Positions 4,401 through 43,671 of a DNA stretch of 64,000 nt are shown in pieces. The position numbers and the translations under genes are program-made. Numbering within the stretch: position 1 is the stretch's first letter; each line of letters begins with the position of its first letter. The DNA is taken from the NCBI GenBank assembly GCA_002104905.1, contig MCFE01000015.1, forward strand, positions 186,001-250,000, read 5' to 3'. The stretch is from Basidiobolus meristosporus CBS 931.73 (lineage: Eukaryota; Fungi; Basidiobolomycota). The notes under the pieces are model-generated. The model had not been told where the DNA came from. It saw only the letters and a program-made list of their open reading frames with translations, and ran no database searches.

Positions 4401-7400
4401 AGGATTTCTTGGAGCTCTACGTTCAGGAATGCCAAGTCGAAAACCGGGCCACAGACTTTTATCAAGGTACATTTACGCCAGCATTATCTTTCTAGCCGCA
4501 AACGAACACAACGGAGCTTACCACAACACTTCCCGATTTAGATCTGTATGCCACTACGACACCGGTTTTTGTGACGAAAGGTGGGCCGGGTATTTCTGCG
4601 TTGAGCAAGCAAAAGTTATCTCGGATTCAAAAAGATCGTCAAGACATCTTGTACACCGAGGGTTAGTTGGCATCAGCTTCTGTTGGATTCTCATGAAATA
4701 GCACTGAATGCCGCTTCTCTACATAGACATCACGATCCATGCGCATCGTATGTTTGGGCCTTTGCCTCATACAAACACTTATGTTTGTGATTGGAAACTC
4801 GACTTCGGAAGTGTGCTGGGTAGAGTCGGCCCAAAATTCCTGGCCGGCTTCGGCTCGTTTCTGGATTCGTTTGTGTTCAATTACGTCGATCGAGAAAACA
4901 CCTTCCCCTCGGAGTTTCAGATCCCACCGTTCCCTGATCTAACTCTGCTAAAGGTCGGGATCGCTGATCTGGACTTCGTCGTGTGGGCAGGTGGAAGCGT
5001 CTCCCAGTTGCTGATCAAAGATGGGATTCGAATCGATTTCAACAACCTGGTCAACGAGGTGTACAACAGCAAGGCCTATATATCGATCCCAGAGCTGATC
5101 ATTCGATTCATGACGGTATCAGATAAGCAGGATGGGCAAATGTATTCCGATGCGGAAAACGAGGAGATTCCTTGGGTGGAGGTGGCTAGTATCGAGACCG
5201 CATTAAACATCAGCACATACACAAACACTCCAGATTGGAGAGTGAGGCGACAAAAGCAGCGATCATTTGTTAGGCACGAAGATAGAGAGACGCTCAGATG
5301 TTGCTTTGTTTACGAAGACGATACGAGCACTATCTATGAGACCTCTTCCACTAAAGCAGCCAGCGACAACCACCTGAATGGCTCATATCTCCCTCCTCTC
5401 ATATCGACTATTCTCGAAGGGTTCAATGAACCCTCTCTGGGCATAAACTTTGATTCCGCCACAAATGGTTTGTCGACCTTTTTCCCCGATTCTCAAAACA
5501 TCTCCCTTCATGAAGATATCAAGGCATTCTGGCCAGCCTGCGATTCACCTACTGAGATAGACGCGGAGTTCGATTTCGACGAAAGCCAGCAGAACAAGGT
5601 AAACAGCTATCTCGACGCACATTCCCTTAACTATTCCGGCTCGTCAAGGGCTGGCTCCATGTTGTCCCGCTGGGATGGTGCTACCAATGATCGAATCAGC
5701 TCGTTTTACCAAAATGGCGCGGCTGACAGTGACTCGGACGTCAGCTACTATATGAATGAGTCGGACGAAGAGGAGAGCGAAAAAGATACGCTAAACAGCC
5801 AAAGAGAGGGTAGATCTGTCCCCCCTAAGCCCGTGTCAATACCTTACTACAAGTACCTTAAAAGATACAAAATGACAGACGATTCAAAGCGGGACATGGC
5901 CGAAGGGAATATTCGACTAAAGCCGCCTTGTACGATGTTTACCGACCTCTCGGAAGCAAACACAGAGACTTCTGCATTCTACCGGTGTAGCTCCAAAGGA
6001 TCTTTCCAAGGCCAGGGCAATTCACCGATATCGGCATGGCTTCGCCAGCAAGATTCTACCATTAGGGATACTTCTGATGAAGCCGAGCAATTTGCCGAAT
6101 CCGAGTTTGAAAACGCGATGGTTCTCGAGTGCCCTGACCGTATCAAAGTATTGATCACACCGGTATTCTTCAAGATAGTACAGGATTTGGTACAGTCGAT
6201 GGATGAACAGGTTTGAATCTTTCTATTGAAGATTTTCTCGCGGCACAGATCAACTGAACCTTTGTTTCTCATTAAATCAGGAGTGGAGCATTGAAAGTAT
6301 CCTGGATTCTATACAGATCGACAACGTCGTCAAACCCTTAAGGTTGGAAAATTTGCGATGTAGAAGTATGAAGTACTTGATTGGAATTCCCAGAGTCCAC
6401 CTCCATTTGATCCAAGACGTGACTCTGCCAGATGACTTCACATCCAACCGGGAGGAATTCCCATATGCTCGCACAAGATATGATCTATCTGATACACTAC
6501 TCTCCACTATGGACGTCGTACTAGACGACTTGATGCTCAACGTTTTCGTCAAGAAGAAGATGGCTCATCCGGAAAGCCATGAAGAGATGGTCGTTGTCGA
6601 CTCCAAGGTTTTGTTGGACTTCAGTCAGTTGAGGGTCAATCTGCGCTTTGTCGGCATCGGTATATTTGGTATATCGGAGACGCGGCTTAAAAAGCTCCCG
6701 TTAGATTTCATCAGCTATTCGGAGAATGAACCAGTTGTGCTGGACCTACTGTTCGATCGTTTTCATTTGGAGTGGCTAGGTAACAAAAAGCCGAATTCCT
6801 TTACAGCGTTGCTGGAGGATTTCTCCGCCATATTCCTTCACGAGGCGGTGGAGATCGTTTTCGGGGCAGCGGCATCCTGGCTGGCCTTTGCGAATGATAT
6901 GAAATCTGTGCTGTCGATGTTCCAAAAGAAAAAATCCAAGCGGGTTCAGTATTTGGTCGCCACCATATCCGATTATTCGGCAAGAAATACTATCGGCCCC
7001 GACCCAGCGTTCCTTTCCCGTGTATCAGGAGTTCGGAGATTGGGTGCCAAGGAGGCGTTCGTCAACGACAGCTGGAGGCTGATGGCCCGCATTCGACATT
7101 GCTCACGCTCCATGACCCACGATTCTATGAGGAGACTCAAGAATTCGCTACGTGACCAGGAGATTGAGAAGTGGAACTTGGATTCAGTACTACACGCGGT
7201 GACCACGAATTTTTCCAAATGGAGGTTCTGGGAATTCGAGAAACTCGAAAGCTGCTTGTTGCTCACAAACATCTTTGGTCGAAAGGAGAGTTCTCCAAAC
7301 GATATAGATGCCGTCATCATCGAGTTTTTGCGGTCGTCAGAGAACTGCTTAGGGATCAAGTTCAACCGAGTCAGTTTGTTCATCTACGGAGAGAACGAGA

Positions 7401-10400
7401 CTGAAGATAACTCCATGGTCGTTGGACCGGTACAGATCGACTCGGAGACCGATTATCTGGACAATACCAGTGCTGTGTATGTTGCTGACGAAGAGAAGAC
7501 GTATGGTCAATCGTCTCGAGAGACGCTGGATTCCTTTGTCAACCTCTTCCTCTGCGCAAAGATTCATCAGATCGACATTGTACTGAAGCCAACACTACTC
7601 ACGTTTGTCAAGCATTTGCTTCATGTGAACCGATGCTTTAGTCCTGTGTTCGACTCGTTTTCTGAGGATGAGAGCGTATCAGGCAGCGATCAGTTGATCG
7701 AGCCAGGTGACGGATTCGACATTACTCGACTGATATCAAAGCTGCGCTTCTCAGCACACGCCATGCTCTTTCTGGACCACATCAATGTTACGGCCACTGT
7801 CGAACACTGGATAACTCAGCTCAAATTTGACTCTATCAAACTAAATGGGATCTCGCATAACCTGCTAGTCAAGCCCAGCCAATCTACCAAGAAACCGATC
7901 GCTCCGGAGACTGTGCGCATCCCGATCTTTGCCGATGCATCGAGTTCGATTGATTCCCTATCGTTAACTCTTCAAGAACGCATCATGACCGAAAACCACA
8001 AGCAACATACTCAGCTTCTCTCGTTCGATACCCACGGAATCGGAGTCAACGTCGCATTCGACAACTCCAAAATAGCCCGGCACAGAAAACTCACGGATAG
8101 CAGCGAGCCCAATTACCTCAACGTATTTGTGAAAGTGCGAGGATTGTCCCTCAAGGTCCCACAGAACCTAATCAAGCTGTATCACTTCGTTGAAAAGTGG
8201 AAAACCGAGAATCTGCCAAATTACGATTTCTTGATCAATCGCTTGATAGCAGAGTGGGAAAGCCACAAAAGTACCTTCCCGATCAAGACCCAGTCGGAAA
8301 AGGTTCACCACCACAGAACCAGCCTGAACCCACTTGGTTTGAAGCTGCAGTTTTTGCTCAAGCAGATCACATTCCAAAGCGATGTGACGCCGTCGCTGAA
8401 TTTCCAGTACGACATCCTGGACTTCCTGGGGTATCTGCAGAGCAATTCTATCGAACTCGACAGCAAAAAGCCTGGATTTGATCTTAGCTACTCAGTCCAG
8501 ATTCTCAAGCAGAACGTGCAGTTCATCACGAAACACAAAGTGCCAACCCATGCTAGCACCGGTAATGAGAATCCCCGCGACTTACACCAGCAAATCGCCA
8601 CCTTCTCCATACCAGCTATACGCTCGGAAGGTCGAGTAGAAACTGTAAACGATCGTAGCAAACTCGAGTCCATCGTTATCATCGACTTTATCAGATTGAC
8701 GCTCAATGCAAACCTCATTGACCAGCTGTTGACCACACACACTTTGCTGAGCAGTGAGTTCAACGACGTGATCGACGTATTCCTCTACTCCACCAGAAAA
8801 ATTCAGGAGCGACGCACGAGGTTGAACGTGCAACCGTCCAACTCGGAAGAAACCCCGAAGAACGCATTGCTGTTCACGAACAAGATCTCCTTCAAAGGAC
8901 TTCGAATCGCGGCGGTTAGCCCGGTTGCGGTCATACTTTTCGAGTCGGACGTCCTGCACGGGTTTGTGTCGAATCTGAAGAACTCCAATCGAGTCAAACT
9001 TGAGCAAGCCGCAGCACCGCTGTCGTGGAAGATATTCGCCAACAAGTTCTCCATCTCCCTGAATCACAACGCGGGCAATATGAGCGATTACATGGAGAGC
9101 ACTGTGTCGCGTGATGACCCGAGCGTGCTGAAGTACCGTATGGCCTTCATCTTGATGGACTTGGTGATGCAGAACTGGAACCCGGAGCCGAAATGCGACG
9201 GAAATGACCAGCGAGGCAAGTCCTCAACAATGGAGTCTTTCTTCATCAAGTTCCTGAAGCTGCATGCGGTCATGCAGCCCATTGCGCTGGGCAAATCCGC
9301 CGATCTGTATATCTACGTGAGCCAGGAACTCGCTCGTAGAAAGGAGATAAAAACGCTCCAGATTCGGAAATTGACGCAGGATACCAAGCGTATACTTCGG
9401 TCGCTGGATGTCGAAGTGCCCAAATACAAGGACAATGGCCGCTCGTTCTTTGAGGATAAGCTACTATCAGTGCAGATCAATAAGCTTGCCATCGCTATTC
9501 CACTAGAGAAATATGAAGATATCGGCTCATCCATCTCCACCACTCCGTCTTCGCAGCACAAGTTGCGTAGCAAGCCAAAGCACCCGACTGCCTTTTTGTT
9601 TACTGTCAGATACATCGATCTATCCACCAAAAAGCTGGAGAGAAGTCACGGCCTAGTAAACGACCTATGCCTTCAGTTCATCCCACAATTTGATCAGAGC
9701 AACGAGAAGTTCTTTTCCCAGGCTCAACACACCAAGATGAATAGAGTGCTTCTGCCGGTAATTGGATGCAAAGTATATTCACAAATCAGCGCGACCAAGC
9801 ACAAGATCCAAATCGATGCCCACGTCGAAGGATTCGAGATCGATATCGAGCCAACTGTTGTGGAGCATATCAACAATCTGGAGGATATCTGGCTGAACAA
9901 CAAGCTGAAGTTCAGCACGCTGGCCAACGAGAATGCCGCCTCGAATCCACAGCACCGACCCAACTCCCTAAGCCATGATGTGCTCACTCTCAAGGATGAT
10001 ACCGGGTCTAGTGCCTTACATATGGTTTCCTTAGAGCTGGAAACAAGCTTTAGCTTTAGTAGTGGAACATGCCGGTTTTATCCGAAGACCTCGAAGTCGG
10101 TCGTGCCAGACCATCTCTCCACGAAAAGCACCTCAGACAATGGCACGCCGATAGATTTGGGAATTGGAGTTCTTGTGATCCCTGGGTTGACCCTCCATTT
10201 CGTGTTTATCACGCCAATTGGGGAATACGCCAGATCGGTCATCGACCCTTCAGCTAGGCGTATCTACCTGGAGATCATGATACACCCAAGCGAGAACATC
10301 GTCTACCCATCAGCGATCCCATTCATCAAAGATATCCTGTCCGGCCTAAAGCTGGGTGTTCAACGCTCGAGCGAAAAGAAGCATGTGACAAAGGTCGAGA

Positions 10401-12358
10401 ACCCGTCCTCGGTCATTCAAGAATTCAAGGTCTCTGTGTACCTGCGACTCTCCCAGACGAGATTCGACCTTAGCTGTCAACCAGCTTCGAAGGTTGCTCT
10501 ATCATTGCTCTGGGAAGAAGGGAACTTCCTCATGTCCTCTGGGAATGAGAACGGCTACCAGGGGATCACGTGCACAGGCAACATCAAAGGAGCCTCTGTA
10601 GTCGTTCAGCATGCCTTCTCACCCGAATATTGTTTACTGGGAGAAACCCGAAACGCTTTGTTCAATATGACCATCATGAGTCGCAATGACAGCACCGCCA
10701 AAGAAAACTCTGTCTCTGCGGTCGCGCAAATCTCGGAGATTCGAGGGGATTTCAATATGCGACATTTCCAGGACTTCTTACTGTTCAAGAATGTTTGGCT
10801 GGATCGGTCCATCGACCAATTCACAACCAAGGATGAAGAGCAGGCCATAGCAGTAAATGGAGAAGTTCATCCCTCGGAGGATACTGAATCGAGCGAGACG
10901 GCCGAGCACCCCAAGCCATTCTCCGTTTTCGTCACCATCTCGTTGAAGCATATTGATATTGCTGGGGATTTAGGACAAGCGATTGGCAAGGTGTACTTCT
11001 CTACAGAAAACATCACCTTCAATACCACGCTGGTTCCGGATGCCTTCAGATCTTTGACATCCACGGTAGGACGCATAGAGCTGAAATCGGAGGGCAGACT
11101 GAAAGGAAGCGCCACGCTCGATGAGCTTCAGGTTGTGCTTCATGTCAAGAACTTGCCTGCAGTCATCGAGAATTCTGCAATACATAATTGGGTTAATGTT
11201 CAGCTAACGCTTGGGCGAATTGCAACCACCTTCGAGTATGAGTACCAGCGTATACTGGTTGCCGAGATCGATCCCATTGTCCTTCATCTGAGAGACCAGT
11301 GGGATAACGTCAACTCTGAGGAAATGAAAGTCAACATCCACTTAAGTTTGACGCTAAAGGAAGTGGAGATTGTCTCTTCAATCAAAACGCACCCGGTGTT
11401 CATAAGCATCGGGAACAAACTGATCATGGTTATTGAAGAGAAACGCCGACTTGCCTTTGATAGCATGGCTTCGACATACTTCGTGGAGGGCAACTCGAAG
11501 GTAAAGCCGCGTCCACCGGCCGAATCAACCGCCAACCCCAATGACCTCCAGAAGCAGTATATCATGATTGGCAAAAAGATGATCTCCCCAGTGGGGGAAC
11601 TCTCGCTGACACTAGAAAGGGCGCGGGTTACAATCTACCCGAACCGGTTCTCCGACAATGATTTTGTTCAAGGAAGACTGGAAGGCCTAGGCATCGTGCT
11701 GAATAGAAGCATCGCCTCGGACAGGAAGATCCACCGCTCGCTTATCCTCAAATTCGCCACCGTGGCGGTCTCCAAGAATCGATGCAAAAAGCTGGAATTG
11801 CAAGACGAAAACCGGCTGAGCATCAGTGAGTGGATCCGGCATATTTCGGAGAGCTCTTCCAAGAATATACTCTACCTTCCAAGCACCAAGATGGAAATGC
11901 TAACGCAGCAGCTCTTTGACAGTCTAGTCATTGAGCATCAATTCTCCACGCAGTTTGTGGGAAGGGTGGATATTGCGCTCAATTTCACCTTGTACAAATA
12001 CCTCATGGAGCTGGCATCGCTGTACAATCAAATGAGAAGCAGCACGCGCAAACCCTCCGACACCCTAAAGCAAAGAGGCGCTCCTGCCGAGGCAGACCAG
12101 AAAACGGAACCTGCCAATTATTCGGATAGAACGCCCGACCCAGCAGCGAAGGAACTTATTTTCAAGGCCGTAGAGCCTATCCGCTTGGATCCCCAACTAA
12201 AACTTATGGGCGACGCTACGCCACCGCTGGAGTGGATTGGCGTCCAACGTCAAAAAGTTCCCGAAGCCATACACGACCATGTCACCTCGAATCTGGACGA
12301 ATTCCTTCTAGCGGTTCAAAGTCTCTATGTTGAGCAATTATCCAAAGGTGCCCATTGA
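1447..12358 (+). CDS. CSF1: Csf1/BLTP1 (KIAA1109/Tweek-like) bridge-like lipid transfer protein, multi-exon
   Basis: N-terminal TM anchor followed by SLLGGRVLFKNFRYYSRNQSIFILQGHITFRYW; HAHRMFGPLP motif; C-terminal LDPQLKLMGDATPPLEWIG. More than 10 short introns in the 5' half and a ~6-kb terminal exon. Confidence 0.93.
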
Positions 12359-35375: not shown

Positions 35376-36590
35376 ATTTTTAAGTTGTATTTAATTGTTC
35401 ACGAACCACTGCTCCAGTTGCTCATCAGATGTATAACCTAGCAAGATTGATTTCAATATTTTTGTGTTGAATAGATATAATGATATTCGATTGCCTGGAC
35501 ATTGTGCCAGTGGTCTCTAGAGTTAAAGTATCCCCAGATATCCTGCAATATCTGACATAGCATTGTATGCTTGTTGACTCGGTGTGATGTCACTGTCGCT
35601 ACGATTTCAAAGTAATCTTGATCTTGATGGTTACATTTGGGTTCTTCTGGACGACTTGGAATATCTTCACCATAACGGCAGGTACCCGGAACATGAAAAT
35701 TTTCAAACTACATTCCAACAAAAAATTTGAGCAGGAAATAATAAAGCTCACAAAGTATTAAAAAGTTGAAACCTCCCCATCCCAATATTTGGAATGGCCG
35801 GGAACAAAGTTAAGGATTAGTTGCAAAAATACCACAATATCTGATAGTATCCTGCTACACAACCATTCTATGCTTTCAGTGAGGAGCTAACCGCAAAGAT
35901 TCTGGTGTACTTTAATCTTCTGGTGGTTTTCAGTAAAGTCAAAATTAATCCCAATAGGTTGCTCCCTGATACACAAATGAGTACAGCCACTAATATAATA
36001 GACTACATTGCCAGAACTACGCCGGTTTTGAATCGGTAGAATAGAATACTTTCGGAGCCAGTCTGCTTGAGTGCTTGCTATTTGGTCTCTGCAATAAAAC
36101 TCTGATGTGTTGCCCCAATATTCGATGAAATGTTTGTTTGGACTTTAGAAAAGCGGATTTGAACCAGCCAGCCAACTCGGAAATATTAAAACATGGGTAC
36201 TAACTATGCTGTTAGCTTGAACTGACGCCGACGCAGGTTCAACTGAATCCCTAAACTAGTCAAGTGACCCCATTGTCAAACAAGACTCGAGCCACTCCCT
36301 AACCTCAACCTCTGCGTGGAAAATCTGCATGCAATAAGCATAAAATCACACTCGTGAAAGATATTTCCCCATTTAGAAGAGGAGAACTCCTGGCAAGTAA
36401 TCTATATATTGTCGATTAATCGAAATCGGGTAGAAATCTCTGGGTAAAAACGAGAGGGTAACCTCCACTAGGGAAAAGGCCGGTATTACAGTTGAGCAAC
36501 GGTGTTTACTGAGTGTATACTACAAATTTATGGAGTGCATGTATGGAACTCCTGCAGATCATAATTGGACCTCAGTCGAGGCATTGCATA

Positions 36591-37040
36591 ATCAGATATT
36601 CCATGGGCTAGATGGTTAGATGTTACACTGACGGCATTGTGGAATTGACTACCTATCATAGTCCGACACCATTCGCCAAGTGAAATATCTGATGGTCTCC
36701 AGCTCATTTTCTAAACATTTTTATCAGATGGGCCGAGTGTGACCAAATGGAGACCAGATGCTATTGCTCCATTTAGCTGTGATAACCCAGTGAGGTTACA
36801 TGCCCCACTCTTCAAATGACTCACCAGTTCCTCAGATCAGTAGCATTATCAGATGGAAGAGAGCAGTGTAGCCCATACATTCACCGTAAATGTTGTGGGG
36901 GACTACGGTTGAGAGCAATGGTGAATTCATGACAGGGGTTGTTTATCAGATTCTCCTCGAGACCAGTGTAGGGCCAAATGCATATATAGTCCTAGACCGA
37001 AGCTTTATCTTTCCATCAAATATTGTTCAAACATCTGATA
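36591..37040. promoter_or_regulatory. Cluster of ATCWGATAA iron-GATA-type sites upstream of zinc-finger gene 1
   Basis: Perfect TTATCAGAT at 36721, 36846 and 36943; ATCWGATAT variants at 36591 and 36685; ATCTGATAG at 37033. Confidence 0.75.
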
Positions 37041-37072
37041 GACCTTTTCCAGACAACCGTTTTACATACACC

Positions 37073-37837
37073 ATGTCCTCTACTGTAGAAGTACAAAGTT
37101 CTCATTCTCTTACACCAGCAAATTGTACCGATATGAATGAGCTCTTGGCTGTCCTAGACCAAGCAAAGATCCCGCGTCCATACAAATGTCCTCTGTGTGA
37201 GAAAGCATTCTATAGAATTGAGCACCGTACCAGACACATCCGCATCCATACCGGTGAAAAGCCATACAAGTGCGAAAGCCCTGGTTGCAAGAAATCTTTC
37301 TCCAGATCCGATGAGCTTGTGAGACACCAGAAAACCCACGTGAACCCTAAGAAGAGGGGGCGTAAAAGCAAGAAGCAACTGGCTTTAGAGGCCGAGCTGG
37401 CCTCCAAACAAAACGAGAAACGCAAGGCTGAATGTACTGATGACGATCACAGTGATATCGAGGCACCCAAAAAGAAGTACTGCCCCTCGACGAGTGAAAG
37501 CCAAGAGACACCTTCTTCTCCCGCACTTTCTTCTACCTCGTCTACCTCTGAAAGTGATGATGAATCAGTCACTACTCCAGAAATGAAGCCAGACCATGGA
37601 CCTTCCCTGGAACTTTTATGTGAGATCTCTACAAGCTTGGCATCCGGAAATGAAATCTCCCTGGAGCAGCCATTGATTGAGGAGGGTTCAGAAACTAATC
37701 AACTCCCTAGTTTTTCCCAGCTGATATCAAAAATTCCCAACAGCCGTATTCTTCCACCGCCAATGATGTCAAACGTATATTGGACACGCTCACAACCAGT
37801 CTCTACCAGTTTCTCCATTTTCCCGGGGTTATTCTAA
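37073..37837 (+). CDS. CreA/Mig1-type two-finger C2H2 repressor, paralog 1 (intronless)
   Basis: [55 protein letters not shown]. Likely ATG at 37073 (ACCATGT). Confidence 0.9.
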
Positions 37838-38157
37838 AATTTGTCATCTTTTTATAAGTATATCCATTTAGGATAATGTAGTTTTGCTGTTGTATATATT
37901 GGACCCCTCCCCTCCTCTTGATCTGCTGTATAGATTTCCTTCATTGACTGATTAAAATTCGATCTCAATCAAACCCAAGTTACATACAGATCTGTCTAAC
38001 TTATTGACAACTTGACTAACTCCATGATCAGACCAAGATGGCAATGTCAAGACTTTATCAAGGAGTACAACATCCACAAAACGAAAGCAGTTAACAGAAT
38101 CCGTACGGCAACCATAATACATATCAACAGTTAAACAGGTCTGGATTGCTTGCAAAG

Positions 38158-38625
38158 ATCTGATAACTTTGACCAAAATTCTGGAAGAATAGGACTTTCT
38201 TTGATAACCAATCGGATGTAATGTACCAGCCGATGTATGAAATACAAGTGACAATGTTGAGGAAAAAATCAGATAAGGAATGTACCAATGAGAAAACTCG
38301 GTAAAGCAAGTATGTTATACCACCTTAAACACGTGCATCAGATTATATTTCACTTGCTGCAGCTAATTCGGAATGCAACAAATATGACTGAGCAACGTTA
38401 GAGTGTCATCATTATTCATTTTGATTTGAAATTTATCAGATTTGGTTTCACATGTTGAACTATACCATTATCAGATTTTTTCGTTCTAGTCAATCCGTAG
38501 TCATTACCCCATTTGGTATGTGCTCGGAACTTGACAAACTCATTCCCACAATATTGATAATTGAGTGGGGCGAGTCAAACTTATCCCCAGCAATTAAATT
38601 AACGAATGGTAGGTATTTATCAGAT
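38158..38625. promoter_or_regulatory. Cluster of five perfect ATCWGATAA sites between convergent 3' ends
   Basis: Sites at 38158, 38268, 38433, 38468 and 38617. Confidence 0.7.
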
Positions 38626-38955
38626 GATCCTTATATATCAAATATAATGTCTAGAATCTTTTGAATATTTGTCCAGATTACGCGATCAAGTTTACATGGA
38701 ATGGTGACATTTGTCTAAAAAAAGACAACATATAATCAGGTCTTCTTTGGGTTCAAGGTACTTGCGGATGGCTATTAGCTGCAGGGACCAACGACTTTGA
38801 ACTAAGATTCCTGGTATTATTCTCAACTTGACAGTTGGGAAGATCTTTATTTTCAGTTGACTAAAACTATTAATGAACGTTTCCTGCTTGTTCATGTGTG
38901 CCAAATATTTTACAACAGCATATATACATACAAAACTAGAAGAATCTACTAGTGA

Positions 38956-39612
38956 TCAAAACCTAAACATCGTTGCTCGGGTAGGTATTTGGCTACTAGT
39001 GGGGATTGGTAACACCCGTTCAGCGGAAATCATTCTCATTAGTTCCCCAAAGCTTGGTAACTGAACTTCAGTCTTCCTCTCAGTCAAAGTAAACTCAGGA
39101 ACACCGCCAAGATGGGTGGGACTCTGACTCTTCAGAGGAGGTGTGGAAACTGATTCGTCCTCGCTCTCTGAAGTACACGAAGAGGCTGGGGAGAGTGAGG
39201 GGTTCTTCGACTCCTGGAAAACGCAGAGTTTCTTCATAGGTGGGCTATCCTCGGCCTTGATCGCGGTTGGGTTGTGGTTGACATTTGGTTGTGAAGTCTG
39301 GGTCTTTGATTTCAACTCAGCCTCTAAAGCGAGTTGCTTTTTACTTTTTCTTCCTCTCTTCTTGGGGTTAATATGAGTTTTCTGGTGTCTTATTAACTCG
39401 TCGGATCTTGAGAAGGACTTGGTGCAGCTGGCGAAATCGCACTTATACGGCTTTTCGCCCGTGTGAATTCGAATGTGTCTTGTTCTATGTTCGATACGGT
39501 AGAAGGCCTTGTTGCAAACGGGGCACTCGTACGGACGCGGGATGGTGGTGTTGTCTAAATTAGCCAATATATCTTTGATATCGGTTTCTCTGGTTTGTAG
39601 ATCACAGGTCAT
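38956..39612 (-). CDS. CreA/Mig1-type two-finger C2H2 repressor, paralog 2 (intronless)
   Basis: [55 protein letters not shown]...QLPSFGEL. Confidence 0.9.
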
Positions 39613-39917
39613 TTTACAAATAGTCGAACTGTGCAGAGCAGTATAGCTTATTGGAATTGATAACTTTTGTTAGTGCTTCATGAACGTTTTTCGTTGACTT
39701 ATATAATGTTCCAGCCAGTCTATGGTCTTTTTTCTGGAGTACTCGGGTCGAGGGCCCATCCAAAAGGGGAAACTCGACCGCTTTTGACGAATTGATTCCG
39801 GATTCCCTTAAAATATCAATGAAAATTTCAATCTCTCGCATTAATTGGACAGCTCCAATGATGGCACATAGGGCTTCAAGAAATACTAATATTCTGGCTT
39901 CAAGTAGTCGTATCAGA

Positions 39918-39929
39918 AATTATGCGGGG
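39918..39929 (+). promoter_or_regulatory. Canonical Mig1/CreA site (AT-box plus GCGGGG)
   Basis: AATTATGCGGGG fits WWWWWNSYGGGG and lies in the divergent promoter of paralogs 2 and 3. Confidence 0.45.
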
Positions 39930-40007
39930 AATCTGGCATTTGGTTTGCCACTACGGAATCCGCAATTGGAAATCTAGCTCCGTTCATACCAAAAGAACAT
40001 TCTACGG

Positions 40008-40720
40008 ATCAGATATTCATTCGTAAGAAGCATGGGTATTGGGTGGAGAGTAAAACTATATGGGGAAACTGCGTGGTGTGTAGTTTCAAATTTGAATGAG
40101 TTTCCGATTCAAATGCATGGATCATTAAATCGTAATTATCAGATAAACTTGTCTAGATGCTGATGGATTATGGAATTTTCAATCACATCATAGCTGAATA
40201 TTTACTTATTGGTTGTGTTTATCAGATTCTCCCATTTTGTAAAAAGATTCTCGGATCTGATTACTCATGGCTACAGTGGTTTGATATTGAGTATGTTAAA
40301 TAGCTCTACTCAGTTCTTGAGGATTTATCAGATGTTGATATGGGGGGGGTGCCTTTCCAAGTCCGATATTTCCATAATTGGTGAGATATTGATTTCTCCC
40401 TAACTTACCCGGTAGTGATTCCTGGTATAGATACCAAGATCGTATTGATTTCAACCCATAATACCTGCTTGACAGGGTTAGTGTCCGCGCTCTAAGCAAC
40501 GTGGAGTTGTGTTCAATTGAAGGAGAAATTTCTCAGAAAATGAAGACGGAGTAAAGTGAACCCTTGTTAATTACTCCGTTTTACTACAAATATCCGGCAT
40601 TGGCCTATTTGGAAATACTTCAATACATCTGATAACTTTTAGTAAGACTTCAATGTTTTATACAGAGAATCTGATAACTCATCCATAATGTTTATTGGAT
40701 AGATGAACAGCATCTGATAA
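40008..40720. promoter_or_regulatory. Cluster of ATCWGATAA sites in the divergent promoter of paralogs 2 and 3
   Basis: Perfect sites at 40136 (TTATCAGATAA, matches on both strands), 40219, 40325, 40627, 40669 and 40712; ATCAGATAT at 40008. Confidence 0.75.
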
Positions 40721-40812
40721 TGGGGCAGACTGATATTTAAATAGAATTTGCATAATACGCCGAGTATACGCTGCAATTCCTAGATTCCAACATCCTTTCC
40801 TTGCTTCAGAAA

Positions 40813-41508
40813 ATGATCGCCAAGGTTGAAAATTCCTCTAATAAAAGTTCTACCAAGCAGTCCAAATACAAAGACATTGCGATGAAAAGACTTCTTGCTG
40901 GCTTAGAGAAATCGCTGGATTCCCGTCTTTATAAGTGCCCTTTTTGCAGTAAAGAGTTCTACCGCGTCGAACATAGAACAAGGCATATTCGTATCCACAC
41001 AGGTGAGAAGCCGTACAAATGCCGCTTTGAAAAATGTTCCAAATCGTTCTCAAGGTCGGACGAACTCGCCAGACATCACAAAACCCATATGAATCCAAAG
41101 AAGAGGGGAAGAAAAAGCAAGAAACAGCTTGCTTTGGAAGCTGCTCTTGCTGCCAAATCCATTGAAGAAGCAGGTCATGCTAACCCGACAACTCAAGAGA
41201 TCCATCAAGGCCTTGACTCTGATAAGTTGAAAGCCAACGAGAAAACGTGTTATTCTGCTATGAGCTCTCCGCGTTCTCCTGGTACTTCCGAGAGTGATGA
41301 GGATGATATCACCACACAACATACCCAGCAAATGGAGGGCAAGCACACATCAACAAACTACGCAATGCAAAGGGATCTCCAAGGCAAGAAACAAATACAA
41401 CTGCCTAGTTTTTCCGAGTTGATGAGCATTATTGCTACCGAGGGGGCATTTCTCATGATGCCAGGTGACATAGGCCCCCAGCCAATGTATTCCAGCTATA
41501 AATATTGA
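40813..41508 (+). CDS. CreA/Mig1-type two-finger C2H2 repressor, paralog 3 (intronless)
   Basis: [55 protein letters not shown]...[11 protein letters not shown] at 40813. Confidence 0.9.
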
Positions 41509-41949: not shown

Positions 41950-43671
41950 ATGAGTCTGAAGAAACTGCCCAGAATTGCCATAGGGACCTATCGTTTGTTC
42001 CTTGGCATGCCTGAACATGAAAGAGCCTTGTTTTCTGCCTTGAAAAGACAATCCGATGAGCGATTAAATTTAAGCTTGATCGATACCTCTTCTAGTTACG
42101 GCAATGGTTTGAGTGAGAGATTGATAGGAAAGGTAGTGTTTCGATTTTTACGAACTATATACTCTGTGAGACTAATAGGTTCCTCCAGGTACTCCACCAC
42201 GAAAATCCCGAGATACTAAGAAGAGAAGAGGTTTACTTGACTTCAAAATTTGGCTACTTGCAAGGGGAGAGCATGCGCCAGCTTCAGGAAGGAAAACTGA
42301 AAGTAAGTTTAACTGTCGTGGCCCCAGGAAATAGAACCCAGGAACCAAACGCTTTTCTTGGTTTAAGTTAGACGAGGCGACTATCATCAAGCCATTTCAA
42401 AGCATTTACCACTGCATTCATCCAGAATTTATGAGGTAGGTTCCTTGTTTCTGTTCTACTTATTCAAGCTTAGTGTGTGGCCATGCGTATTGCCCGGTTT
42501 GTTCTGAGTGAAGTTACTAAGTTATACCTTTATTATGGAAAGAATAGAGATCAACTCTCTCGCAGTTTGACGCGGTTACAAACCGATTATGTCGATTCCT
42601 ATCTAATTTGTAACCCTGAATATTATCTGATGCACCATATTCAATCATCGGACGTGAATGTCAGAGGTTCAGCCAAGCGTCCCATACATCTATCGCAGCA
42701 CTCTCTTGACTAACCACCGTTCACATCGATTCTCCAGAGTTACAAGCAAACCTACTTGCTAGAATCGCGGAGACATTCGAGGCTTTAGAAGGGGAGATCA
42801 AGAAGGGAACAATCAAATCGGTGAGTGGAGCTGTACTTACCCTAGCAAACCTCAGATAGCTAACTGGTGCACAGTACGGTATTTCTAGCAATAGTTTTGC
42901 GCTGCCTCCGGAGCATCCTCACTTCTTGCCATACAAAGACTTGACAAAGCTGGCTGAGGAAGCGGCATCCAAGTCCAGAGGAACAAAGGACCACGGCTTT
43001 TCTACTGTTCAATTCCCCGCCAACGTATTGGAAACAGAGGGCTTAAAGTCGATGCTGACGTGGGCGAGCAAGCAGAATCTACAGGCAAGTGCCTATACAG
43101 TGCGGGTTTCTCCCAATCCATGGGTTTCTGAACGTGTTCATAGATTATGACAAGTCGGCCGCTAAGCTCGTTCGATCAGACTGGCATATGGAAGATAGTC
43201 AGCACACCACGAACATCATACCAGGAAGTGCTCGCAGAAACCTTAGAGCACATCCAGAAAAACACCGTCTCCTCGGACAATAAGCCGCACTTTCTGGTCG
43301 AAACCATCAACAGACTAAATTCTGAGATTCAGAACATTGACTCAGTGTTCAGGTATGAAGAGATCAAGCAAAGAGTGTACTCATTGATCCATAAGAAGTT
43401 TGATGAAATACCCCACGAATGGTTGGAGCATCTTCAGAAATTTTTCAACGAGTACGAACGGGAGGTGCAGCACATCGGCTCAGTGTGTCTAAAGAAATAT
43501 CTCGACGCGCGTGGGATCGAGGTAGGCGAAGGAGAGGGGAACTTTGAAGAGTTCGCAGTGCAGTTTTTGTTGGAGCATGAGAAGATCACCTCAGTCATCC
43601 TCGAAGTCGGCACGGAGAAACACGTGAATTTCGCAAGAAAGATGTTGAAGATCGATTTGGAAGACGACTGA
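41950..43671 (+). CDS. Aldo/keto reductase-fold protein, multi-exon (one GC-AG intron)
   Basis: IAIGTYR...IDTSSSYGNGLSERLIG|...LTSKFG...HCIHPEF|RDQLSRSLTRLQTDYVDSYLICNPEYYL...TVQFPANVLE. Confidence 0.8.

Follow-up and report, generated by a model that had tools for sequence, protein, structure and literature searches.

A conserved array of ATCWGATAA motifs around three short Mig1/CreA-type zinc-finger genes of Basidiobolus, and its probable link to iron supply

The 64-kb stretch of the Basidiobolus meristosporus CBS 931.73 genome analysed here (contig MCFE01000015.1, positions 186,001 to 250,000; hereafter the window, with all coordinates counted from its first base) carries three neighbouring genes, g1, g2 and g3, whose products resemble the Mig1/CreA repressors, and the non-coding DNA around this trio is crowded with the 9-mer ATCWGATAA. 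The initial annotation of the window had described three Mig1/CreA-type paralogs with open frames in the order +, -, +, and this is indeed what lies at the locus: g1-g3 are uninterrupted open reading frames (ORFs), each encoding two C2H2 fingers, with pairwise identities of 49-57%. The perfect copies of the 9-mer that surround them fall into three arrays of 3, 5 and 7 sites.

g1, 37073..37837, + strand: 254-amino-acid (aa) Mig1/CreA-like protein with two C2H2 fingers; an ATG further upstream, at 36890, lies in the same open frame.
g2, 38956..39612, - strand: 218-aa paralog of g1 and g3.
g3, 40813..41508, + strand: 231-aa paralog; the start chosen fits the length of the public protein P0010, and the ORF is open from a TTG at 40801.
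Array 1, 36721..36951, upstream of g1 and inside the g1 5' leader: perfect sites at 36721, 36846 and 36943.
Near-matches of array 1: 35837/35839, 36589/36591, 36685 and 37033.
Array 2, 38158..38625, in the gap where g1 and g2 converge with their 3' ends: perfect copies at 38158, 38268, 38433, 38468 and 38617.
Array 3, 40136..40720, in the promoter region from which g2 and g3 diverge: a palindromic pair of overlapping sites (40136/40138), then 40219, 40325, 40627, 40669 and 40712.

An exact search across the window returned 19 copies of ATCWGATAA, whereas 100 shuffles averaged 1.7 copies and never exceeded 7. Fifteen of the 19 lie between 36721 and 40720, in the non-coding DNA flanking the three paralogs. 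These intergenic regions, three stretches amounting to 4081 nucleotides (nt) at 38% GC, would be expected to hold 0.1-0.2 sites under a first-order Markov model, in good agreement with the 0.2 that the initial annotation had estimated by hand. All 14 perfect sites that it listed are present, and 40138, the opposite-strand partner of the palindromic 40136, brings the number to 15. Its five near-matches were an undercount, as we find 12 one-mismatch sites in the non-coding DNA of the trio, 11 of which retain the ATCWGAT core. The sites are also few elsewhere, as it had said, although there are four rather than three in the 57.9 kb outside the trio (5118, 42623 and 59464, together with 8688, which had been missed). 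Three of these four are within coding sequence: 5118 and 8688 inside a Csf1-like gene, and 42623 inside a reading frame beside the trio which we take for an aldo-keto reductase gene.

The enrichment concerns the whole 9-mer, and not the GATA core. The ATCW prefix stands before 15 of the 23 GATAA cores of the trio region, compared with 4 of 98 elsewhere in the window, and HGATAR shows no enrichment around the trio beyond the 9-mers themselves. Just 5' of the motif T is avoided (2 of 60 sites, pooled from the window and from Basidiobolus ranarum, discussed below). The flanks of the sites are otherwise unlike one another, the long repeats of the region are the paralogous coding parts only, and the repeats in non-coding DNA consist of the motif with a short extension (for example TGTTTATCAGATTCTCC, at both 36940 and 40216). 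With long repeats confined to the coding parts, a dispersed repeat or a tandem duplication of promoters is ruled out, and the earlier view that the array is no tandem repeat holds. Considering the enrichment, the unrelated flanks and the coding-only long repeats together, the array is genuine and far beyond chance.

In a protein search from which the window's own products were masked, the nearest named relatives of the trio proteins come from B. ranarum (46-68% identity), and the sole hit in B. meristosporus is a distant paralog. The B. ranarum genome (GCA_040143965.1) holds three syntenic copies of the trio, here called L001, L002 and L003. The neighbours of the trio in L001 are a RAI16-like gene and, at the opposite end, an aldo-keto reductase gene; a RAI16-like gene occupies the corresponding place in the window, and the frame at the other end of the window trio is the one that we take for the same aldo-keto reductase. 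In a maximum-likelihood tree each window gene groups with the B. ranarum genes of the same position, with support of 98/99 for g1, 100/99 for g3 and 87/89 for g2 (one g2 copy is unresolved), so the triplication is older than the split between the window species and B. ranarum. Within the g3 group the L002 copy branches outside a cluster of the window, L001 and L003 genes, while the g1 and g2 groups leave its position undecided. The three copies of the locus and the branching of L002 suggest either an old duplication or a hybrid or polyploid origin of the B. ranarum genome.

Alongside the genes, the sites themselves have been retained. Conservation of the motif at orthologous loci, which the initial annotation had named as a check on its proposal, is evident from counts that are independent of any alignment: the three trio intergenic regions hold 18 copies of ATCWGATAA in L001 (of 20 in total), 12 in L002 (of 12) and 15 in L003 (of 15). 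Each intergenic region was also aligned with MAFFT between the window, L001, L002 and L003, and as MAFFT may anchor on motifs the resulting figures are somewhat favourable: identity to the window is 0.39-0.53 overall and reaches 0.64-0.76 in the window motif columns against 0.40-0.51 elsewhere, whilst a B. ranarum site stands within 5 alignment columns of 11 of the 15 window sites, for six of them in all three copies. All three sites of array 1 (36721, 36846 and 36943) have an aligned counterpart in each of L001, L002 and L003. The region between the 3' ends of g1 and g2 contains five sites in the window, five in L001, three in L002 and three in L003. Such conservation across species shows that the array is functional; according to the counts and alignments, selection acts on the full 9-mer, on how many copies there are and, largely, on where they lie, and by the same comparison the locus is a conserved cis-regulatory module.

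Two candidates for further features were set aside. A gene hidden between g1 and g2, where their 3' ends converge, is ruled out, as this region contains no conserved ORF and no contig of the transcriptome-like run X1 (see below). The site at 42623 and a site at L001:3739 both fall within the neighbouring gene, which is the aldo-keto reductase in L001; the window site is coding, and the two are not homologous.

Clusters of this kind are not a general property of zinc-finger genes. At the loci of distant paralogs, namely P0026 of B. meristosporus, P0059 of Cokeromyces and P0107 of Mucor, there are 0-2 copies of ATCWGATAA each and no cluster. A metagenome scan for more orthologous loci returned generic zinc-finger genes only and was reused as a negative control, in which 75 unrelated zinc-finger loci carry at most one ATCWGATAA each. 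A weaker cluster does accompany the B. ranarum paralog P0014 (209 aa, with the motif LPSFSEL), where 2 perfect sites and 5 further ATCWGATA lie within 2.3 kb (L008:5510-7814). About 2.5 kb downstream of P0014 there is a 69-aa HMA-domain gene, which is copper-chaperone-like.

What kind of proteins does the array surround? The finger helices are invariant across g1-g3, reading YR(I/V)EHRTRH in finger 1 and SRSDELxRH in finger 2, where x is V, I or A, and the three proteins also have in common a basic segment, an acidic TSES patch (TSESDDES) and a C-terminal QLPSF..L motif. Their contact residues are R/E/H/R in finger 1 and R/D/E/R in finger 2, a pattern that the CreA-like protein P0045 fits as well. 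The C-terminal motif takes the form LPSF(S/G)(E/Q)L in g1-g3 and most Basidiobolus paralogs, whilst the three B. ranarum g2-position proteins gave no match to the pattern used; elsewhere the corresponding motif is LPGIRNL in P0045 and LPSIRSL at the C-terminal end of short Mucorales proteins. Among the 120 best database hits, LP[SG][IF]xxL occurs only alongside Mig1-type helices, and those hits that have two fingers and both Mig1-type helices are all short fungal-type proteins or P0045 itself, nearly all of them with LP[SG][IF]xxL. By features, an Atlas cluster named 'Carbon catabolite repressor' comes out as one of the nearest (score 0.95). Relatives with solved structures are the fingers of WT1 and EGR1, and the finger-2 helix, RSDEL(V/I/A)R in the trio, compares with RSDELTR in EGR1. 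In Zif268 the helix RSDELTR reads GCG. The contact residues of the trio predict a GC box of the GCGGGG type (SYGGRG), and not a GATA site.

Both the two-finger contact residues of the Mig1/CreA class and a C-terminal motif of its effector type (LPxIRxL) are found in g1-g3, and judged by fingers and motif the trio is of this class, but in a short form. The likeness extends to the general helix patterns F-x-R-x-EH-x-TRH and FSRSDEL-x-RH, present in P0045, and to the C-terminal LP[SG][IF]xxL, which is LPSFSEL in the trio. In contrast to known Mig1/CreA repressors, the trio proteins are short, occur as three tandem copies, contain the basic segment and the acidic patch, and do not have the full-length architecture of ~400 aa or more with its additional conserved regions, which places them in a short-form subfamily. 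Established repressors of the class bind SYGGRG and act in response to glucose through Snf1 and Ssn6-Tup1. Nor do they have the hallmarks of HapX or Php4, namely a CCAAT-complex-binding domain, a bZIP-like region and Cys-rich motifs; Pfam assigns nothing other than zf-C2H2 families to g1-g3. Short Mig1-type two-finger proteins (169-255 aa) ending in LPSI(R/H)SL(L/F) are found in Mucorales and related fungi (P0059, P0078, P0100, P0107, P0047, P0082 and P0113), and on the strength of these matches the short-form subfamily seems widespread in early-diverging fungi. Two loci of such Mucorales-type genes were checked, and neither has a GATA array.

A look-up of RNA runs for a 5.9-kb stretch of the locus listed none, but two other sequencing runs bear on expression: X1, of 27 million letters and of a kind that was guessed, and X2, which is genome-sized. 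Contigs of X1 cover exactly 36730-37907 (g1, word depth ~22) and 38812-39659 (g2, where the word depth of 217 exceeds that of either other gene), with none over the intergenic DNA or the body of g3. X2 contigs, on the other hand, cover the whole locus, and X1 therefore behaves like a transcriptome. In this transcriptome-like sample g1 and g2 are transcribed, with g2 > g1 >> g3, and the extent of the g1 contig places sites 36846 and 36943 in the g1 leader. One X2 contig joins the finger regions of g2 and g3 (39445 / 41046) on opposite strands, which is most likely an assembly-graph artefact of an inverted paralogous repeat (220 nt, 75% complementary). Another has an extra G behind 40341, at the end of a run of G (40334-40341), reflecting either a homopolymer length difference or assembly uncertainty.

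Which factor might read such an array? Fungal GATA factors with two fingers are iron regulators, a Cys-rich linker being a further mark of the SreA/Fep1 type, whereas the single-finger factors of nitrogen and light regulation need only HGATAR. As the ATC half-site is invariant here, ATCWGATAA would point to a factor of the iron type. The 9-mer was defined as the motif over-represented in the SreA regulon of Aspergillus fumigatus, and the in vivo sites of Ustilago Urbs1 and Schizosaccharomyces pombe Fep1 comply with it (PMC2610380), so the initial annotation was right to call it an iron-GATA site. The over-representation in regulatory DNA that characterises the SreA/Fep1 regulons is found again at the trio (15 sites against 0.1-0.2 expected) and is conserved in L001-L003. 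The motif also resembles the palindromic ATCWGATA, a bipartite high-affinity site that requires both fingers of vertebrate GATA-1 (Trainor 1996, cited in PMC2610380). GATA-1 is haematopoietic and does no iron sensing, and the likeness is relevant only as a structural reason for the conservation of the ATC half-site. GATA factors of the siderophore type are well conserved among the fungi, B. meristosporus being in the set compared (PMC5311114). Basidiobolus has an expanded set of siderophore non-ribosomal peptide synthetases (PMC7466969), and as it lives in the gut of amphibians and reptiles as a symbiont and now and then causes disease, its iron circuitry is of practical interest.

The conserved layout probably ties these Mig1-like regulators to iron supply. 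Beyond this, we lean, without great firmness, towards a scheme in which the trio is under an iron GATA repressor of the SreA/Fep1 type and in turn represses GC-box targets under iron scarcity; the identity of the factor, the direction of control, the response to iron and the targets we infer as follows. A two-finger iron-sensing GATA repressor of the SreA/Fep1/Urbs1 type would bind the arrays, with one finger reading GATAA and the other the inverted GAT. When iron is sufficient, it would sit on the three arrays and damp the trio; when iron is scarce it would leave, and the three proteins would accumulate, bind GC boxes (SYGGRG, with GCGGGG as the predicted form) and repress through their C-terminal LPSFxEL motif, which resembles the LPxIRxL of CreA-like proteins. 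The trio would then form a second tier of the iron-starvation response, as a functional parallel to HapX or Php4.

We regard the locus as a new wiring variant of a known regulatory logic. SreA-HapX of Aspergillus, Fep1-Php4 of S. pombe and Sfu1-Sef1/Hap43 of Candida albicans are circuits of the same type. In Aspergillus, SreA represses hapX (PMC2610380), and the likeness is that an iron GATA repressor, here a proposed one, acts on ATCWGATAA-type sites to control a second, starvation-phase regulator besides the uptake genes. In Basidiobolus, however, the second tier would be a trio of two-finger C2H2 proteins of the Mig1 class and not a bZIP-like factor that binds the CCAAT complex, and the density of sites is unusually high, with 15 in 4 kb, some of them between two 3' ends. 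A Mig1-class factor has been tied to iron before, in Cryptococcus neoformans, where Mig1 affects genes of iron use and acquisition and is cross-regulated with HapX in low iron. There, in contrast, the link is via HapX and concerns a single gene, and the portion of that account available to us reports no iron-GATA array on MIG1 (PMC4863601). The initial annotation had believed its second tier to be undescribed. This stands for a dense iron-GATA array on Mig1-class genes, of which we found no description in the available parts of the literature, and it does not stand for the components, as an iron-GATA repressor over a starvation regulator (SreA-HapX; PMC2610380) and the Mig1-HapX-iron link of Cryptococcus (PMC4863601) are both published. 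Its observation is thus confirmed, and its interpretation partly supported.

Several points weigh against iron-dependent repression of a repressor trio. The proposed link to iron draws on knowledge from other fungal phyla, and the putative repressor role and GC-box specificity of the trio are deduced from residues. At 209-260 aa, the proteins come to roughly half the 378 aa of P0045 and the 406 aa of the Atlas cluster representative. Five of the window sites lie between two 3' ends, an odd location for a promoter-proximal repressor. SYGGRG is not enriched around the trio (12 in 4.1 kb, compared with 3.4 per kb window-wide), so that autoregulation through GC boxes has no support beyond one conserved match, described below. 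Finally, g2 is not silent in X1, a sample whose culture conditions are not recorded; with a depth of 217, repression in that sample would have to be partial or lifted.

There are also rival readings. The arrays could be bound by a different GATA factor, be it one of nitrogen (AreA/AreB-like), light (WC-2-like) or developmental regulation, or a two-finger factor of the animal kind that this early-diverging lineage has retained, and nitrogen, light or development would then govern the trio in place of iron. Every GATA factor reads the GATA core, the palindromic ATCWGATA also serves the two-finger GATA-1 of vertebrates, with high affinity (Trainor 1996, cited in PMC2610380), and the expression of g2 in an ordinary sample (X1) would fit such control. 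We nevertheless think it unlikely, as the full 9-mer with its invariant ATC half-site is the signature of two-finger iron regulators in the fungi studied so far, and the HGATAR with which single-finger types are content is not enriched beyond the 9-mers. Even if the binding factor were no iron regulator, the locus would still be among the clearest conserved binding-site arrays in a non-Dikarya fungus.

Alternatively, an iron-type GATA factor might bind with the opposite or a mixed sign: in the presence of iron it would activate all or some of the three genes, and their products would help to shut down uptake or starvation genes in iron-replete cells. Cir1 of Cryptococcus is indeed an activator as well as a repressor. 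Within the same X1 sample g2 is clearly expressed, g1 weakly, and g3 is undetected, which indicates that the three genes are not regulated alike; the Cryptococcus MIG1 transcript is reported to be repressed by HapX in low iron (PMC4863601). Against this, SreA, Fep1, Urbs1 and Sfu1 are repressors at such sites (PMC2610380), and dense multi-site arrays are typical of the targets that they repress, which makes a reversal of sign improbable in our view.

Could the arrays instead be an autoregulatory field, bound by the zinc-finger proteins of the trio themselves? That they occur only at genes of this clade, in weaker form at P0014, would fit, but the contact residues match those of P0045 and predict GCGGGG rather than an AT-rich GATA palindrome, and we give this very little credence. 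That the cluster is a functionless product of chance, base composition or a dispersed repeat is refuted by the shuffles (0 of 100 reaching 19), by an expectation of 0.1-0.2 sites, by the unrelated flanks and by the conservation of site position in DNA otherwise only ~40-50% alike.

To return to control of the trio by an SreA/Fep1-type repressor, its interest lies in where it is proposed. Iron regulation is well mapped in Dikarya, with a GATA repressor and HapX/Php4 or Aft, and hardly in early-diverging fungi. A dense and conserved array of iron-type GATA sites on three Mig1-class genes is a concrete, testable candidate for the missing starvation-phase regulator, and it also suggests a direct link from iron status to carbon and respiratory repression. 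As Mucor genomes contain SreA homologs and lack HapX and Aft (PMC7011435), there is room for a different starvation-phase regulator in early-diverging fungi. We tentatively raise the possibility, to which we would not yet commit, that in Basidiobolus, and perhaps in other early-diverging fungi with SreA and without HapX, the iron-sparing arm is run by a short Mig1-class trio in place of a HapX/Php4-type factor, with dense SreA-type arrays holding the trio off when iron is plentiful. Iron status would in that case feed straight into a catabolite-type repression (GC-box, Tup1-dependent) that acts on respiration and on other metabolism costly in iron.

Besides the GATA sites, the alignments contain further conserved blocks.

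36816..36823: ATGACTCA, part of the g1 leader region, with the same letters in the window, L001, L002 and L003.
36697..36702: CTCCAG, conserved in 4 of 4; an SYGGRG-type match (the Mig1/CreA consensus) and the only such match that is conserved.
36933..36938: CAGGGG, conserved in 4 of 4; contains AGGGG, stress-element-like, and lies 5 nt from the GATA site at 36943.
40694..40700: ATTGGAT, conserved in 4 of 4; a minus-strand CCAAT box; of the GATA sites upstream of g3, the last two lie on either side of it.

The ATGACTCA block resembles a bZIP/AP-1-type site, and together with the stress-element-like and CCAAT blocks it probably marks the action of further regulators beside the GATA factor. CTCCAG, being the sole conserved SYGGRG match, is a possible site of auto- or cross-regulation by the trio. 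At a distance from the trio, two long ORFs of 502 and 2004 aa (4708-12358) match the N- and C-terminal regions of Csf1 and are probably one large Csf1-like gene; the sites at 5118 and 8688 inside it are chance matches.

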